The position numbers and the translations under genes are program-made. Of a stretch of DNA of 64,000 nt, positions 37,357 to 44,812 are shown in pieces. Each line of letters opens with the position of its first letter. The stretch's first letter is position 1. The notes beneath the pieces are model-generated. The model saw nothing but the letters and a program-made list of their open reading frames with translations, made no database searches and was not told the DNA's origin. Location: positions 124,001 to 188,000 of IMG/VR virus record IMGVR_UViG_3300047548_001236; one strand, 5' to 3'.

Positions 37357-38253
37357 ATGACCAGACAAGCAATCAACGTAGGTGCAGCAGCAAACGACAG
37401 AACAGGCGACGCTCTGCGGACAGCCTTTCAGAAGACCAACTCAAACTTTGTTGAATTGTATGATCGTGTTGGCACACTCGAGACTTCTGGAGGAAACGGA
37501 GACAGGTCGTGGGAAGATGTATCCACAAACCAAACGTATAACGTCGTTGAGTGGAACAGCGGTAAGACTGTCACAGTAACAAGCACACCAACTGAAACCT
37601 ATACCCTAACAACATACGATGCAAGATCAAATTCGCCATATATTTACTTTGTGTGGGACCAACAATTCATCACTAACGTTTGGGAAGGCTACAACCACCC
37701 GTTCGGAGGCGGTGAAGCATATGAGCTTTCGCTTGACGGCGGTCAGACGTGGTTTGCTGTTGAACAAAGTGGATACAATGGTGGCACGTTCCTTTATTTT
37801 TCTGTCGCTTACGCATACGAGGGACAATACACATTCACGTATCTTCAAGGTGTAAACGTTCAGCTTAGATTCAATCGAGGTAGTCTACCTACGCCTTGGT
37901 TTGATTTGGCAGATGCTCCAGTAAACGCCAACTCAATCATAACCGTCAGCATGGATGTTGTTGCCAACCCAAGAATGGTCGGAGCTGGTAACACTGTTTT
38001 CCAAGCAACGTCGTTCAAGTCAAACCTTGTATTCTCTAATGTGTTGTATAACGACAACACAAGCGAAGGATCGGTATCAACAGGGTCAACGACCTACTCT
38101 GGAAACAATTCCATAAACAGCGATATGAATATGGAAATTCGTTTGAGCAGCAACACGGCTGTTGACGCTGGAAGACTTTACTGCGACTTTGACAATGGAA
38201 GAGTCGGAACAATTTCTTTCTACTGGAACGCTAAGTTGTTCACGAGGTCTTAA
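37357..38253 (+). CDS. Structural protein with a gp9/gp10-like N-terminal segment and unknown C-terminus
   Basis: QAINVGAAANDRTGDALRTAFQKTNSNFVELY matches the T4 gp9/gp10 N-terminal motif. Confidence 0.6.
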   Translation: MTRQAINVGAAANDRTGDALRTAFQKTNSNFVELYDRVGTLETSGGNGDRSWEDVSTNQTYNVVEWNSGKTVTVTSTPTETYTLTTYDARSNSPYIYFVWDQQFITNVWEGYNHPFGGGEAYELSLDGGQTWFAVEQSGYNGGTFLYFSVAYAYEGQYTFTYLQGVNVQLRFNRGSLPTPWFDLADAPVNANSIITVSMDVVANPRMVGAGNTVFQATSFKSNLVFSNVLYNDNTSEGSVSTGSTTYSGNNSINSDMNMEIRLSSNTAVDAGRLYCDFDNGRVGTISFYWNAKLFTRS

Positions 38254-39059
38254 TGTCAATAGCAAACTACTTCTACAATCAGACAACGCGAAAGTATATA
38301 GCTTTATTTGGAACTCTTTTCAACAAGATTTCCATTGCAAGATATGACCACACTACCAATACGGAAGTGCAGCGTATGATTGTTCCTATATCATACGGTC
38401 CTTATCAGAAGTATTTGGCGCGTATCCTACAAGATCCCAACATCGATCGCAAGACTGCAATTACACTGCCGAGAATGGCGTTTGAGATTGACAACTTGCA
38501 ATACGATGGAAGCCGTAAAATCAACTCAATTAAAAAGCTGAGAAACGACAACGGTGAAACGGACTTCCTATATGCCCCAGCGCCGTACAATATAAATTTC
38601 ACGCTATACATAATGGTCAAATATGCAGAAGACGGTGTGCAGATCTTCGAGCAAATAGCGCCGTTTTTTAAGCCGGAATGGACAACGACGGTTTCGCTTA
38701 TAGATGGCATCGAGCCTTTGGATATTCCATTGGTTTTGAACAATGTGACAACAGAAGATATATATGAGGGAGACTTCACCACAAGACGTAGCATCTTGTG
38801 GACGTTAAACTTCACGATGAAGGCTTGGTATTTCGGTCCTGTGAGACAGAAGGGCATTATCAAGTTCGTTGACGTGAGAATGTTTGACAACACGACAGCA
38901 AACACAGTGTTTATGAGCCAGGTAAATGTTCACCCTGGATTGACAGCAAACGGACAACCAACATCATATGCCAACAACTCTATCCCATGGGAGCAAATTG
39001 AGATTGATGATGATTGGGGTGTCGTGACTATTATTAGAGATGAGTTAATAGAGCCATGA
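38253..39059 (+). CDS. 15: Tail sheath stabiliser/terminator gp15
   Basis: YIALFGTLFN, VPISYGP, TLPRMAFE and EQIAPFF motifs. Confidence 0.9.
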   Translation: MSIANYFYNQTTRKYIALFGTLFNKISIARYDHTTNTEVQRMIVPISYGPYQKYLARILQDPNIDRKTAITLPRMAFEIDNLQYDGSRKINSIKKLRNDNGETDFLYAPAPYNINFTLYIMVKYAEDGVQIFEQIAPFFKPEWTTTVSLIDGIEPLDIPLVLNNVTTEDIYEGDFTTRRSILWTLNFTMKAWYFGPVRQKGIIKFVDVRMFDNTTANTVFMSQVNVHPGLTANGQPTSYANNSIPWEQIEIDDDWGVVTIIRDELIEP

Positions 39060-39493
39060 ATGAAAAGAAAATAGCAGAGGTATTGGGACTGAGACCTCTT
39101 GATGAAGTGCCTCAAGAAGAAGCCAGTGTTCCCACTGTGGTTGAAATAATTGACGCCCCGCCCACTCCACTGGCCACGGCCCAGGAAGAGGTGATTGATG
39201 ATATTGAACTGGCGAAGCAGAACATATCAGAGCTGATGACTAAAGGGGTTGAATCGCTGGATGAACTCATGGCTGTTGCCAAGCAATCCCAGAATCCTCG
39301 TGCGTATGAAGTTGTATCAACTTTGATGAAAACTCTAATTGATGCCAATAAAGAATTTGTGGGCATGTCTGAGAAGAAGAAATATGCGAAAGAGGACCAT
39401 CCGGCAGGTCAGGCCACAACTAATGTGACAAATAACAACTTGATTCTGTCCACGACAGACATGTTGAAAATGATAAAGGGAGATATGGAGTGA
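39056..39493 (+). CDS. 16: Terminase small subunit gp16
   Basis: AKQSQNPRAYEVVSTLMK and TNNNLILSTTDML motifs. Position. Confidence 0.85.
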   Translation: MNEKKIAEVLGLRPLDEVPQEEASVPTVVEIIDAPPTPLATAQEEVIDDIELAKQNISELMTKGVESLDELMAVAKQSQNPRAYEVVSTLMKTLIDANKEFVGMSEKKKYAKEDHPAGQATTNVTNNNLILSTTDMLKMIKGDME

Positions 39494-40098
39494 ATTACAG
39501 TATAGAGCAGATAGCTGAAGTGATGAAGTGCAGTGAAGACGTCGAATACTTTGCCGACAACTACATCAAATTCTCAAACCCCAACGGCGTTGTCCTGGCC
39601 AAATTGAATGATTTTCAACGCAGTGTGATCAGTAATTATAGAGACAACAAGGTCTTTTTCATGCCTGCAGGGCGGCAAGAAGGCAAGTCGACTGTTGCTG
39701 CTATTATACTACTACACCAAGCTCTTTTCACAGAGCAGAGAGTCAGTCTAGTCTTTGCACGCACCAAGTCTCAGAGCAGTTCAATTATTGAGATCGTCAC
39801 CGAAATGTATGAACGTCTGCCCGAGTTTTTCTCAATGTGTTCCAAAATGACCGCCCGCAGCAAGTCAAAGGTGGAATTTGGCAACGGGTGCTCCATCATC
39901 AGTGCAGGGTCAGACATTAATTACGGTAGAGGTAGAGCCATCTCGACCATCTATATTGACGAGTCAGAATGGTTTGATAAACTCGAGGATGTGTTGACCT
40001 CGTTATATCCTTGTATGGCCGCAATACCCTATTCTAAACTGTTTGCCCTATCGTCAACGTTTACAGGTGATTCATTTAGAAGACTGAGGGTGACCTAA
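39490..40098 (+). CDS. Stand-alone paralogue of the terminase ATPase domain
   Basis: GRQEGKST (Walker A), TIYIDE (Walker B) and LSST. Colinear with the N-half of gp17 and has no nuclease domain. Confidence 0.7.
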   Translation: MNYSIEQIAEVMKCSEDVEYFADNYIKFSNPNGVVLAKLNDFQRSVISNYRDNKVFFMPAGRQEGKSTVAAIILLHQALFTEQRVSLVFARTKSQSSSIIEIVTEMYERLPEFFSMCSKMTARSKSKVEFGNGCSIISAGSDINYGRGRAISTIYIDESEWFDKLEDVLTSLYPCMAAIPYSKLFALSSTFTGDSFRRLRVT

Positions 40099-40979
40099 TG
40101 ACTGAAGGCTATCTTGGTAACCAGCACCTCAAGAAGACCGGTGTCCCAATTGAGTGGACGCCAGAACTCATTCGAGAGTATGCAAAATGCGCTGCGGATC
40201 CTGTTTATTTTGCTAAGAAGTATATCAAGATTGTCCATGTGGATAGAGGACTTGTACCCTTTGAGATGTACCCCTATCAGGAAAAGATTGCACGTGAGAT
40301 AACAGACAACAGACGTGTTGCTGTTCTTACTGCTCGTCAGAGCGGAAAGACCACAACTGCAATGGCAATCATCCTGCATTATATCCTTTTCAATGAATTT
40401 AAGACGGTGGCCATACTTGCCAACAAGGGTGACTCAGCTCGAGAAGTTCTATCCAGAGTCCAATTGGCCTATGAATCACTCCCCAAGTGGTTGCAGCAGG
40501 GTATCCTGGAATGGAACAAGGGTTCAATTGAGCTTGAGAATGGATGCAAGATATACGCAGGAACTACTTCATCGTCTGCAATTCGTGGTAAATCTATTTC
40601 ATTCCTCTATTTGGATGAGGTGGCCTTTATTGAAGGTTATGATGATTTCTTTGCGTCGGTCTACCCCACAATTTCATCGGGTGAAAGCACTAAACTGTTG
40701 ATGACATCAACACCAAATGGACTGAATCACTTTTACAAGACGTGTGTTGGCGCGGAAGAGGGAACAAATGGATATAGATTCGTCAAAGTCATGTGGTACG
40801 ATGTCCCTGGTCGTGATGAGCGGTGGAGACAAGAAACCCTTGCAGCTCTTGATCATGACCTTGAGAAGTTCAAACAAGAATACGAATGTGTCGCGGGAGA
40901 AACAACCGTTACTATACGTGATAAAGTCACCGGACAAATAATGACTATGGCAATTTCCGAGCTATATGATATAGTGTGA
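40098..40979 (+). CDS. 17: Terminase large subunit gp17, N-terminal part fused to a 30-aa N-intein
   Basis: RQSGKTT, LYLDE and TSTPNG motifs. Ends KQEYE|CVAGETTV...ELYDIV*. Confidence 0.92.
   Translation: MTEGYLGNQHLKKTGVPIEWTPELIREYAKCAADPVYFAKKYIKIVHVDRGLVPFEMYPYQEKIAREITDNRRVAVLTARQSGKTTTAMAIILHYILFNEFKTVAILANKGDSAREVLSRVQLAYESLPKWLQQGILEWNKGSIELENGCKIYAGTTSSSAIRGKSISFLYLDEVAFIEGYDDFFASVYPTISSGESTKLLMTSTPNGLNHFYKTCVGAEEGTNGYRFVKVMWYDVPGRDERWRQETLAALDHDLEKFKQEYECVAGETTVTIRDKVTGQIMTMAISELYDIV
40887..40976 (+). other. Split intein N-fragment (30 aa)
   Basis: CVAGETTVTIRD matches intein block A, and ISELY is typical of short N-inteins. Confidence 0.85.
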
Positions 40980-40991
40980 ATTCCTTGGATT

Positions 40992-41029
40992 TATAAATAC
41001 CTCCGCTAGTATATACCGAGGAGGGGTAT
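40992..41029 (+). promoter_or_regulatory. Late promoter and RBS-sequestering hairpin of the endonuclease gene
   Basis: TATAAATA at 40992-40999. ATACCTC (40997-41003) can pair with the GAGGGGTAT RBS region (41021-41029). Confidence 0.6.
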
Positions 41030-41030
41030 C

Positions 41031-41750
41031 ATGACGACTTATGTTTACTTGTTAACTCGTAAAGATGGGTTAAAGTATGTGGGAATCACCGTAAATTTGA
41101 AGAGAAGAGTTAAAGAACACACAAAGACAAAACGATTTGAGCAAGGAATAACAAGTGTCGAAGTGTTGGCTGAATGCAACACATATGCTGAGGCAGAAGC
41201 ACTCGAAGAGATTTTCATACGACGTTATGATACGTTTACCTCGGGTTTGAATGTAACGCGCACAGGCAAAGGTAAAAACGATACAGATAAGTTCAACACC
41301 TATGGTTACATATATTCGGACACGTCTAAGCAGAAAATGCGAGACAGTCATTGGTCAAAACGGGGTGGAAAACCGTGGAACCGAGGAAGACAAAACGTGT
41401 ATAGCGAGCAAACAAAACTTCAGTGGTCGGGGAAGAGGTCAGGGAAATGTTGGGGAAAAAGAATAATCGATCCTGACACAGCAAAAGATATCCTCAATGC
41501 CTACAACCAGAACACAATTGTTTTTAACTGTGAATTTTTGAAGACTCTCGTAAAGAAAACACAGGTTCCTATTATACATGAACTCACTCTCGATGATCTA
41601 ATAGGATCGAATGGAAAACCGCTCAGTAAAATCGTATTGTATAGCCATTATTTTTCGAAAAAATATGGTGTAACTCCTACGACTATAAGAAATATCATAA
41701 CGGGTAAAACCAAGCTAGCGATGGGACACGATGAACAAATTTCAAACTAA
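41031..41750 (+). CDS. Free-standing GIY-YIG homing endonuclease (Seg-like) between the terminase halves
   Basis: YVYLL...KYVGIT...RRVKEH...E...GLN motifs. Confidence 0.85.
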   Translation: MTTYVYLLTRKDGLKYVGITVNLKRRVKEHTKTKRFEQGITSVEVLAECNTYAEAEALEEIFIRRYDTFTSGLNVTRTGKGKNDTDKFNTYGYIYSDTSKQKMRDSHWSKRGGKPWNRGRQNVYSEQTKLQWSGKRSGKCWGKRIIDPDTAKDILNAYNQNTIVFNCEFLKTLVKKTQVPIIHELTLDDLIGSNGKPLSKIVLYSHYFSKKYGVTPTTIRNIITGKTKLAMGHDEQISN

Positions 41751-42057
41751 ATACGAGGTTCTTACCCCTAGCGGGTGGGTGGATTTTGATGGAATCAAAA
41801 AAACGACCTCGTCGAACATTATACGGTTGGTTACTGATAGTGGAAAAGAACTATCGTGCACTGATGGGCATCGAATATCTTGTGACGCTGGTTTTGTGTT
41901 TGCTCGAGATATGAAGACAGGCGATTTTATCCACACAGAGGACGGTCTCGAACGAGTCGTGCACATAGAAAACGCATATGAAAAAACGGACGTGTACGAC
42001 CTTCTTGATGTTAAGAATGGAAATGTGTATTTCACCAACGGTGTTGTGAGCCACAAT
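41731..42057 (+). other. Split intein C-fragment (109 aa)
   Basis: Ends in His-Asn followed by Cys+1 at 42058. Confidence 0.9.
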
Positions 42058-42879
42058 TGCGAATTCCTCGGATCGTCGGGCACACTTATCTCTGGTGAAA
42101 GACTAAAGACTCTCAAGGATCTCAAGCCTACTGTTCAATCAGGATCTGTCAAACAATACGTTCCTCCTATTGAAGGTCACGTGTACGCATTGATTGCAGA
42201 CGTATCAAGAGGAAAAGGGCTCGACTACTCAACGTTTTCGATAATTGATGTGACAGAAATGCCCTACAAACAAGTGTGTGTATATCGAGACAATGCGATC
42301 GGACCCGGTGATTATGCGAGCATAATATATCGTTTAGGTAAGATGTATAATGAAGCTCACACACTAATCGAAATAAACGATAGTGGCGGTCAGGTTGCTG
42401 ACACTCTTTTCTTCGAGTTTGGATATGAGAACATGCTGTTTACAGAGCATGGCGGAAGATCTGGAAAGAGGATTTCCGGTGGATTTGGCAAAGGAGTCGA
42501 CAGAGGCATACGTACTTCAAAGAGTGTCAAATCAATCGGTTGCTCTATCCTCAAACTGCTCATTGAACAACAGCAGCTAATCGTCAATGATTTTGATACA
42601 ATCGAAGAGCTCAAGCACTTTTCCCGTAAAGGTGCTTCATATGAAGCTGAATCGGGATGGCATGATGATATGGTTATGACGTTGGTGCTATTTGCATGGC
42701 TAACTGATCAGAACTACTTTAAGGACGTGACCGATATAAATACGCTGATGACGTTGAGACAACTATCCGACGATCAGATTGAGGAGGATTTGCTTCCTTT
42801 TGGTTTCATTATGAGTGGCAATGAAGAAAAACCCGTGAAGTTTGTGGATGCCCAAGGGGATGTGTGGATGGAAGTGTGA
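41731..42879 (+). CDS. 17: C-intein (109 aa) fused to the terminase large subunit C-terminal nuclease part
   Basis: CTDGH (block B), VYDL...VVSHN|CEFLGS. Then ADVSRGKGLDYS and HDDMVM, the gp17 nuclease motifs. Confidence 0.92.
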   Translation: MNKFQTKYEVLTPSGWVDFDGIKKTTSSNIIRLVTDSGKELSCTDGHRISCDAGFVFARDMKTGDFIHTEDGLERVVHIENAYEKTDVYDLLDVKNGNVYFTNGVVSHNCEFLGSSGTLISGERLKTLKDLKPTVQSGSVKQYVPPIEGHVYALIADVSRGKGLDYSTFSIIDVTEMPYKQVCVYRDNAIGPGDYASIIYRLGKMYNEAHTLIEINDSGGQVADTLFFEFGYENMLFTEHGGRSGKRISGGFGKGVDRGIRTSKSVKSIGCSILKLLIEQQQLIVNDFDTIEELKHFSRKGASYEAESGWHDDMVMTLVLFAWLTDQNYFKDVTDINTLMTLRQLSDDQIEEDLLPFGFIMSGNEEKPVKFVDAQGDVWMEV

Positions 42880-42891
42880 GAGTGGGTTTGA

Positions 42892-42899
42892 TATAAATA
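42892..42899 (+). promoter_or_regulatory. T4-type late promoter (sheath/tube)
   Basis: TATAAATA in the intergenic gap. Confidence 0.85.
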
Positions 42900-42955
42900 G
42901 AAAGAACATATACTCCAACTCTTTCAATACGGCATAACACAAAGGAGAAAAAAAC

Positions 42956-44812
42956 ATGGTTTTTTCTGTAAGCCCATCAGTTACAGTTCGTGAGGTTGAC
43001 CTTACCTCGAACATTCCTGCAATTGCTTCCAACCAAGGCGCGATAGCGGGTGTTTTCAATTGGGGTCCCGTTGGTGAAGTAACGTTTATCACGTCAGAGA
43101 CAGAACTCGTCGAAGTTTTTGGTAAGCCAAACGACAACAACTACGAGACGTTTTTCACAGCAGCCGATTTCCTTGCATACTCAAACCAGCTGTTTGTTGT
43201 ACGTGCAGATAACGGTGCCGTTAAGTCGGAAGCTACGCTTGTAGCATCTAACGTTGCCTCGTATGACTTTGAAGCCAAGTACCCTGGTTCGATCGGCGAC
43301 TCGATTCGTGTAGCATACGTAACCGGTTCTACTGAGTATTCACAAGACTTGTTCGCTGTGGGTCAGCTTGATGACGCATCCAACAACGACATCTTCAACG
43401 AAAGCACAATCACCTTCATCGCAGACGTCAACTATGACGACGTGATTAACGAAGGTGACATCATTGTCCTTGGAAACGACTCTGTAGGCTACCAAAATCT
43501 TGTTCTCGCTTCTAAGAATATTCAACCTTCTTCCAACGCAACGTATGAGTATACGCTGACATTCAACAGCAAGTACACGCTGGCCGAATCGTCCATCGCC
43601 AATCTCAAGCTGTCTCGTCGCTGGGCATATAGCTACATCGTCGAAAAAGCTCCAACGGCTGGTGCAATGCACCTGGTCGTCGTTGACGGCGACGGTGCAA
43701 TATCTGGAGTCGCTGGTACGATTCTGGAAAGATACACCGACATTTCGCTTTCACCAACCGGCACGACAATTGACGGTGTTCCCAACTACTACAGAACTAT
43801 CATCAACGATAGCTCTAACTGGATTGCAATTCCTGATACTTCGGCCGATATTGTTGCAAACCAAATTGGTTACCTATCGTTCTCTGGTGGTAGCGACGGA
43901 TCATCCGAGTCGACTGTCAACTTTGGTAGCATGGCTCTTGCATATGACTTGTTCAAGGATACAGAACAGTTTGACATTGCGTTCATCATGCAGGGTAAGG
44001 CAATCAACGATACCAACCTTGCAAACTACATCATCAGCAACGTGATCGAAGCTCGTAAAGACTCTGTCTTGTTCATCTCGCCAGACAAGAGCTTGATTCT
44101 GTCCGGTAACAATATTCGCGCAAGCAGAAATGAAATCGTCACGGACATCATTAATTTTAGAGGCAGGCTGCAGTCTTCGTCCTACTGGTTCATGGACACG
44201 GGCTATAAGTACCGCTTCGATAAGTACAACAACACGTTCCGTTGGGTCCCTCTCAACGGCGATATGGCAGGTCTTGCTGCTAGAATCGATCCGTGGGAGT
44301 CGCCAGCTGGATACAAGCGTGGCATTATCAAAAATGTTACCAAACTGGCTTTCAATCCTAACAAGGCTGAAAGAGATCGTCTGTACGGTCGTGACATCAA
44401 CTCTGTGATAAGCCAGGCTGGACAGGGAACGCTGCTGTTTGGAGACAAGACAGGTCTGGGTCGTTCTAGTGCATTTGATAGAATCAACGTACGTCGTCTG
44501 TTCATCGTGATTGAAAAGGCCATCGCGACTGTTTCAGCTTCGCTGCTGTTCGACTTTAACGATGAGTTCACGCAGACCGAATTCAACAACCTTGTTGATC
44601 CTCTCCTGAGGGATATCAAGGGCAGAAGAGGTATCACTGATTTCCGCGTGATTAGTGATGGAAGAGTCAACACTCCTGACATCATCGACCGCAATATTTT
44701 CAGAGCTAACATCTTCATCAAGCCTGCAAGAACCATCAACTACATTGAGCTGACCTTCATCGCTACCAGAACCGGTATCTCGTTCGAAGAGCTCATTGGA
44801 CAACAGTTCTAA
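42956..44812 (+). CDS. 18: Tail sheath protein gp18
   Basis: SPSVTVREVD, FNWGP, WESPAG and RINVRRLF motifs. Confidence 0.95.
   Translation: MVFSVSPSVTVREVDLTSNIPAIASNQGAIAGVFNWGPVGEVTFITSETELVEVFGKPNDNNYETFFTAADFLAYSNQLFVVRADNGAVKSEATLVASNVASYDFEAKYPGSIGDSIRVAYVTGSTEYSQDLFAVGQLDDASNNDIFNESTITFIADVNYDDVINEGDIIVLGNDSVGYQNLVLASKNIQPSSNATYEYTLTFNSKYTLAESSIANLKLSRRWAYSYIVEKAPTAGAMHLVVVDGDGAISGVAGTILERYTDISLSPTGTTIDGVPNYYRTIINDSSNWIAIPDTSADIVANQIGYLSFSGGSDGSSESTVNFGSMALAYDLFKDTEQFDIAFIMQGKAINDTNLANYIISNVIEARKDSVLFISPDKSLILSGNNIRASRNEIVTDIINFRGRLQSSSYWFMDTGYKYRFDKYNNTFRWVPLNGDMAGLAARIDPWESPAGYKRGIIKNVTKLAFNPNKAERDRLYGRDINSVISQAGQGTLLFGDKTGLGRSSAFDRINVRRLFIVIEKAIATVSASLLFDFNDEFTQTEFNNLVDPLLRDIKGRRGITDFRVISDGRVNTPDIIDRNIFRANIFIKPARTINYIELTFIATRTGISFEELIGQQF

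Follow-up and report, generated by a model that had tools for sequence, protein, structure and literature searches.

How does a phage obtain its large terminase subunit (TerL) when the gene is broken in two and an endonuclease gene occupies the break? The question is raised by a locus in IMG/VR virus record IMGVR_UViG_3300047548_001236, of which we analyzed positions 124,001 to 188,000; this whole stretch of 64,000 nucleotides is referred to as the window, and coordinates are those of the window unless another locus is named. Very probably, TerL is trans-spliced by an atypically split intein, the halves of which are parted by a free-standing GIY-YIG homing endonuclease gene. We demonstrate here the anatomy and homology of the locus, the exact extein junction and a presence/absence polymorphism among relatives. 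A preliminary description of the DNA had proposed a split TerL with an N-terminal intein fragment (IntN) of 30 residues and a C-terminal fragment (IntC) of 109 residues that contains TDGH and ends at VVSHN/CEFLGS, and base for base, coordinates included, this is what we found. The locus is composed as follows (ORF, open reading frame; aa, amino acids).

40098-40979, + strand: TerL gene 1, ORF of 293 aa, N-extein of 263 aa followed by IntN of 30 aa
40098-40886, + strand: TerL N-extein, ATPase domain, 263 aa, ending ...KFKQEYE (from Terminase_6N, the gp17 structure and phage phiN3)
40887-40979, + strand: IntN, 30 aa, starting with Cys1, motif A only, TGA stop at 40977-40979 (from ORF reading and related N-fragments)
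41031-41750, + strand: GIY-YIG endonuclease gene, 239 aa, intact and free-standing
41731-42879, + strand: TerL gene 2, ORF of 382 aa, IntC of 109 aa followed by the C-extein of 273 aa
41731-42057, + strand: IntC, 109 aa; motifs B (TDGH), F (VYDLLDV) and G (VVSHN) (from 6dsl_B and Pfam Intein_splicing)
42058-42879, + strand: TerL C-extein, nuclease domain, 273 aa plus stop, from Cys+1 (CEFLGS...) (from Terminase_6C and structures)

Judged by the similarity of both of its products, the interrupted gene is TerL/gp17. The N-extein matched Pfam Terminase_6N (E 4e-25) and the T4 gp17 structure 3ezk_A (E 5e-62), and Walker A RQSGKTT and Walker B LYLDE are readable in it. The C-extein matched Pfam Terminase_6C (E 1e-9) and the nuclease-domain structures of RB49 (E 8e-42) and T4 gp17 (E 1e-36), and 3726 homologues of it were found at E ≤ 1e-40. 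The closest TerL proteins are those of the Sinorhizobium phages phiN3 and phiM12 at ~56%; alignment of the N-fragment ORF with phiN3 TerL gave 56% identity, and tblastn gave 55.9% for the C-extein. Because both halves keep their catalytic motifs and a strong similarity to gp17, the phage most probably depends on this gene.

The sequences that border the break carry the HINT splicing motifs A, B, F and G as well as the Cys+1 nucleophile. IntN opens with CVAGETT, its Cys1 encoded at 40887-40889, and the pattern C-V-x-G-(D/E)-T ... ELY also closes the N-fragments of related loci, the IntN lengths of which represent a subset that leaves out many loci with a diverged motif A. As IntN carries the motif A pattern and the remaining motifs lie in IntC, the split falls between motifs A and B. 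Both fragments are encoded on separate genes, IntC in a different frame. IntC matched chain B of PDB 6DSL, the consensus engineered intein CatC, over 112 residues (E 4e-17, 65.6 bits), and the alignment is co-linear from query residue 3 and chain residue 11 through SH(N/A)-C-E, including Glu+2 and Cys+1, whose codon at 42058-42060 directly follows VVSHN. Pfam Intein_splicing matched IntC residues 72-109, and lesser PDB matches were the gp41-1 and VidaL inteins. When 25 diverged homologues were aligned, the distant ones being 37-50% identical to IntC, S107, H108, N109 and C110 (Cys+1) were invariant and the motif B histidine H47 nearly so. By homology to CatC, itself a consensus of AceL and GOS, we thus assign the intein to the atypically split AceL/GOS-TerL class, and the earlier assignment to AceL-TerL stands.

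If the exteins are ligated, their junction should resemble that of an uninterrupted TerL. This is the case in phiN3, where QEYN-NEFLGSSGTL corresponds to QEYE and CEFLGSSGTL in the window; the exteins abut with no residue lost or gained. Hence the junction QEYE-CEFLGS predicted in the preliminary description fits phiN3 TerL residue for residue. It also occurs literally, since the exact predicted junction KFKQEYECEFLGS (KFKQEYE-CEFLGS) runs uninterrupted through the intein-less TerL proteins P0047 and P0048 (78% identity), which have a length of 536 aa, the sum of 263 and 273. Cysteine at the junction position is common among intein-less TerL members. On gp17, the junction maps to approximately residue 353/354 (chain index of 3ezk_A), which we take to be a few residues ahead of the ATPase-nuclease hinge.

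Among relatives, presence of the intein varies. All six nearest C-exteins (82-90% identity) carry it, the next nearest (78%) do not, and further down both states are mixed, as expected for a mobile element. Moreover, a wastewater contig with flanks ~92% identical to the window links position 40883 to 42058 via a single TGC codon (QEY-C-CEFLGS). The segment missing from it is the cassette of IntN, endonuclease and IntC, and its ends coincide exactly with the intein boundaries. We regard this contig as the empty allele of a relative and not as spliced RNA, because it is ~8% diverged, its -1 codon is replaced and it stems from a run flagged as a probable DNA run. The cassette is hence seen to be polymorphic among close relatives, which bears indirectly on putative homing by the endonuclease.

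For the product of the locus, we propose the following route. The ATPase half would be made with a tail of 30 IntN residues and the nuclease half with a head of 109 IntC residues. Docking of the short IntN into the nearly complete HINT domain of IntC would complete an active site of Cys1, the motif B Thr/His, the motif F Asp, the motif G His-Asn and Cys+1. Class 1 protein trans-splicing would then ligate ...QEYE to CEFLGS..., setting free the intein pieces and yielding a TerL of 536 residues. The GIY-YIG gene may be a selfish passenger, preceded by a late-promoter-like motif of its own and by a strong ribosome-binding site (RBS). Its product probably cuts intein-less or endonuclease-less TerL alleles in co-infection, and repair after cutting would copy the whole IntN-endonuclease-IntC cassette into the target allele. 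Insertion of this gene between motifs A and B most likely split a once contiguous mini-intein.

Structure prediction of IntC and IntN, each with five extein residues, gave a complex score of 0.66 versus 0.02 for the best of three controls, a mark that was attained by 51 of 78 solved complexes and by 2 of 108 mismatched pairs and that is possibly inflated by memory of the solved Cat complex 6DSL. Cys1, residues 41-48 with motif B and SHNC at 107-110 all lie in the predicted interface. That possible inflation weighs against trans-splicing, and so do several further points. IntN alone had no meaningful match in the PDB, as its 30 residues are too short. No clear Shine-Dalgarno sequence precedes the gene for IntC and the TerL C-extein, and this gene overlaps that of the endonuclease, which bears on the supply of the C-fragment. 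A hairpin that would sequester the RBS of the endonuclease gene folds no better than shuffled sequences (z = 0.14). We infer both the splicing chemistry and the evolutionary direction.

Could the intein halves instead have lost splicing and serve only as a tight, non-covalent dimerization module, keeping the ATPase half of TerL bound to the nuclease half, as in the fractured NrdA of phage Aeh1, which works without splicing? Fractured phage genes that function without ligation are documented (Aeh1 nrdA; PMC2677866, PMC3045599), the two TerL domains fold independently as seen from their separate crystal structures, and the IntN-IntC prediction covers docking, not chemistry. However, the catalytic positions Cys1, motif B His, His-Asn and Cys+1 are all kept, and they are invariant or nearly so in the 25 diverged homologues; such constraint is not needed for mere binding of the intein halves. 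In addition, AceL-TerL and GOS-TerL splice in vitro, and the consensus Cat-TerL splices fast (PMC11766414). We thus consider a module that only dimerizes improbable, and trans-splicing the better account of the conserved catalytic residues.

Far less probable still is that the halves are joined by group I intron splicing, read-through or frameshifting. GIY-YIG genes of T4-like phages classically sit in group I introns, and the N-fragment and endonuclease ORFs share a frame (both 40098 and 41031 are divisible by three). Yet read-through is excluded by two in-frame stops (TGA at 40977, TAG at 41007) that separate these two ORFs and by the different frame of IntC. The break is flanked by bona fide intein motifs under selection, and the single contig that skips the segment is the ~8% diverged empty allele of another phage. 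A group I intron or other RNA element was also sought as such and rejected, with no Rfam match in 40700-42300 at E ≤ 1 and flanks that encode intein motifs. RNA splicing and frameshifting, which the preliminary description had named as routes that could refute protein splicing, hence find no support. Equally remote is a broken TerL in a phage that is defective or packages via another terminase: a second TerL-ATPase-like ORF does lie immediately upstream (39490-40098), but it has no nuclease domain, shares only 29% identity with the true N-extein and also stands beside an intact TerL in phiN3. The extein halves are strongly conserved (56% for N, 55.9% for C), diverged contigs retain the split layout, the contig is abundant at a depth of 163 in a genome rated complete, and a Terminase_6N search of the genome revealed no second complete TerL.

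Assembly error and chance are ruled out as sources of the split locus. Chance is excluded by the match of IntC to 6dsl_B (CatC) at E 4e-17. An assembly error is excluded because one contig covers 39400-43000 at a word depth of 163 with zero differences or indels, because pieces identical to the locus are present in a second, independent freshwater-sediment run, and because the three-gene layout is repeated in two independent Logan contigs (L005 and L006), the exteins of which are 82-90% identical to the TerL of the window.

The record itself comprises 282,855 bp and is rated 100% complete by CheckV, and its freshwater origin follows from a 100% word match of the window to a freshwater metagenome. 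Gene order surrounding TerL is T4-like, as judged from Pfam matches and ORF reading:

38253-39059: gp15 tail-sheath stabilizer
39056-39493: small terminase (TerS)
39490-40098, + strand: TerL-ATPase-like paralogue, 202 aa
from 42956: gp18 tail sheath

Megablast of 39000-43000 against GenBank phages gave zero matches, and the phage therefore has no close cultured relative. We conclude that it is a T4-like, mesophilic freshwater phage of a phiM12/phiN3-like lineage. The Terminase_6N search returned two matches only, the TerL gene and the 202-aa paralogue without nuclease domain, and a genome search with PF14890 found no intein besides that of TerL. The stop codon of the paralogue overlaps the TerL start, and the protein retains a Walker A-like GRQEGKST and a Walker B-like IYIDE. 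It has counterparts in phiN3 (gp94) and in L005 and L006, not in L007. The public gene call P0009 (322 aa) begins at Met61 of the 382-aa ORF, 60 codons late. It drops the conserved first 60 IntC residues (41731-41910), more than half of IntC and motif B included, and public annotation would therefore miss the intein.

From its domains, the gene between the TerL halves is identified as a free-standing GIY-YIG homing endonuclease of presumed activity and target. Its 239-aa product matched Pfam GIY-YIG PF01541 (E 8e-9, 36.1 bits versus a cut-off of 22.6) and the PHROG 314 homing endonuclease (E 1e-10). A weak HTH_3 match at residues 208-228 marks a helix-turn-helix (HTH)-like DNA-binding tail at the C-terminus, and this tail is conserved across gap endonucleases. 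A PDB search with the endonuclease found no match to I-TevI; the sole match, a weak one, was the GIY-YIG fold protein 1zg2 (E 0.003). Three ORFs on the + strand, with the endonuclease free-standing in the middle, make up the fractured-gene arrangement that had been recognized from the letters alone. Another GIY-YIG domain gene lies outside the window (G000:C1:53917-54159, - strand) and is too dissimilar to be retrieved with the TerL-gap endonuclease as query.

Two signals precede the endonuclease gene:

40992-40999, + strand: TATAAATA, T4-late-promoter-like motif upstream of the endonuclease gene (from motif count and relatives)
41018-41026, + strand: GAGGAGGGG, strong Shine-Dalgarno sequence of the endonuclease gene (from sequence reading, with minimum free energy (MFE) pairing to CCTCC at 41000-41004)

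The window contains 11 copies of TATAAATA against 1.75 expected, an about six-fold excess, and 10 of the 11 are on the + strand; sites include 27041, 35823, 40992, 42735, 42892, 47058, 48883, 49599 and 56869. The copy at 42892 precedes gp18, the one at 40992-40999 sits 32 nt ahead of the endonuclease start codon, and its ATAAATA core stays unchanged ahead of the endonuclease gene in four relatives (L005, L006, L011 and L014). By analogy with the late promoters of T4, TATAAATA is a putative late promoter of the structural gene block. Sequestration of the RBS by pairing with CCTCC is only a suggestion, since the MFE fold is not better than shuffles. Together, the late-promoter-like motif and the pairing of the RBS with an upstream complement recall the regulation of I-TevI. 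The ATG of the IntC gene is conserved in L005 and L006 and lies in a 20-nt overlap with the endonuclease gene. A scan of 38900-43100 for sigma-70 promoters and terminators stayed near shuffle expectation and was uninformative.

Scanning IMG/VR with the IntC alignment yielded 436 relatives confirmed by tblastn; 80 loci were retrieved. In the gap between the TerL halves, 27 fetched loci contain a GIY-YIG homologue, a tabulation that is not de-duplicated and in which several GIY-YIG loci are near-identical. Other genes take its place elsewhere: an HNH_3 gene in four loci (e.g., L019:3409-4005 and L045:3406-4002), a DUF559/Vsr-like gene in four loci (including L050:2301-3446, L060:1971-2831 and L066:2445-3611), which belongs to the other family, besides GIY-YIG, reported by Dassa et al. 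(PMC2677866), and a 307-aa ORF without Pfam match in three loci (L063-L065; L063:3079-4002). A further 15 loci have endonuclease-free gaps of ≤210 bp, with N and C ORFs that often overlap. In L007 (3772-4011) and L008, the N-fragment has a tail of 81 aa in which IntN is fused in frame to about 50 residues of the C-terminal HTH end of the gap endonuclease; no endonuclease gene is present there, and the N and C ORFs overlap by ~14 nt. These ~50 residues are a deletion remnant of the endonuclease.

Contiguous cis-intein alleles also exist at the same TerL site, in the AceL-like branch (L021:172-2220, L030:188-2227 and L036:3010-5115). The contiguous intein of L030 keeps Met-Ser-Lys at the former IntC start, and that of L036 has ~10 extra linker residues which resemble the region upstream of IntC. 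Both traits hint at re-fusion, and an ancestral contiguous state would be equally possible.

Two additional intein arrangements came to light in this survey. The same IntC type, ending there in SHN / C-A-F-I or C-D-E-F, occupies a second TerL site at Walker B, where it is also atypically split (L058, L061, L084; P0017, P0021, P0030, P0035, P0044), some of the gaps containing TnsA-like nuclease ORFs. In a close relative, L006 (1383-3272), the same split intein is accompanied by another one within the Walker A P-loop (RQSGK / ALALD...THN / TTTAM). This second intein is contiguous, measures ~336 aa, has Ala as first residue and carries two LAGLIDADG-like motifs.

Tentatively, as a reading that we find plausible without yet favoring it, selfish nucleases may have used the intein gap repeatedly as a landing pad, and the family may still hold every natural stage from the birth of a split intein to its reversal. 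In that case, insertion and replacement of endonuclease genes, and not protein-folding constraints, would determine where the atypical split lies, and split and contiguous intein states would interconvert in nature. We regard endonuclease turnover and the contiguous alleles across the family as a more interesting lead than the single locus. The latter provides a clean in-genome case of an essential late gene in a large phage that would rely on protein trans-splicing, and it also exemplifies the life cycle of a homing endonuclease acting on an intein. For protein ligation it is of moderate practical value: it contributes a member that is complete and mesophilic, has the pair Cys1/Cys+1 and comes with a 30-residue IntN and native exteins, and hundreds of diverged natural variants, contiguous versions included, can be mined (436 in IMG/VR alone).

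Class, arrangement and mechanism were all published in the years 2009-2018. The window locus is a further member, and nothing is overturned by it; that the class was known had been acknowledged in the preliminary description, and its members are abundant. Closest are the natural split inteins AceL-TerL and GOS-TerL and the consensus Cat-TerL (PDB 6DSL) (Thiel 2014, Bachmann & Mootz 2015 and Stevens 2018, cited in PMC11766414); that review describes the two natural TerL members and one consensus design, with an IntN of 25 aa for AceL-TerL and 37 aa for GOS-TerL. AceL and GOS, like the window intein, reside in the TerL of a T4-like myovirus. The split after motif A leaves an IntN of 25-37 aa and an IntC of ~104-122 aa in these systems, compared with 30 and 109 aa in the window, and the nucleophile pair Cys1/Cys+1 of AceL-TerL is shared. 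CatC likewise has the ...SHN/C-E junction, but its alignment needs two gaps (2 and 4 residues) and the window IntC is diverged. After C-E at +1/+2, CatC continues with non-native residues; AceL-like relatives in IMG/VR (L021-L036, P0036) carry CEFLGS. Whereas AceL and GOS stem from Ace Lake or the GOS collection, the window intein belongs to a mesophilic freshwater phage with complete genome context and has an IntN of other sequence and length.

The arrangement was described by Dassa et al. in 2009 as 'fractured genes', including a terminase locus from Lake Gatun (PMC2677866). Their genes follow the same order as ours, N-extein with IntN, free-standing endonuclease, and IntC with C-extein, all on one strand in overlapping or tight frames, and GIY-YIG, found here, is one of the two endonuclease families reported. 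The break in their terminase locus leaves only motif N1 in IntN, which is the unusual position observed here as well and the one later made use of in AceL-TerL and GOS-TerL. However, that locus is an incomplete metagenomic assembly, whereas the window has three complete genes between gp15/TerS and gp18, and its relatives span endonucleases that are present, replaced, decayed or absent, plus contiguous inteins.

TerL also hosts HINT inteins in mycobacteriophages and Ackermannviridae (PMC5050341; Klebsiella phage Magnus). These are cis-splicing, located at ATPase motifs (P-loop, Walker B, C-motif) and have the endonuclease nested when present. In contrast, the window intein is located where the ATPase domain ends, and a free-standing gene splits it. 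The IntC-type sequence also matches the Magnus intein (L001), which was considered as an allele of the window intein and rejected, as it occupies a different site near the P-loop. Finally, the intron-encoded or free-standing GIY-YIG endonucleases of T4 (I-TevI, Seg proteins) and 'collaborative homing' also invite comparison. These enzymes share with the window endonuclease a GIY-YIG catalytic domain and a C-terminal DNA-binding tail. Unlike the T4 intron endonucleases, which travel with an intron, the endonuclease of the window would travel with a split intein.

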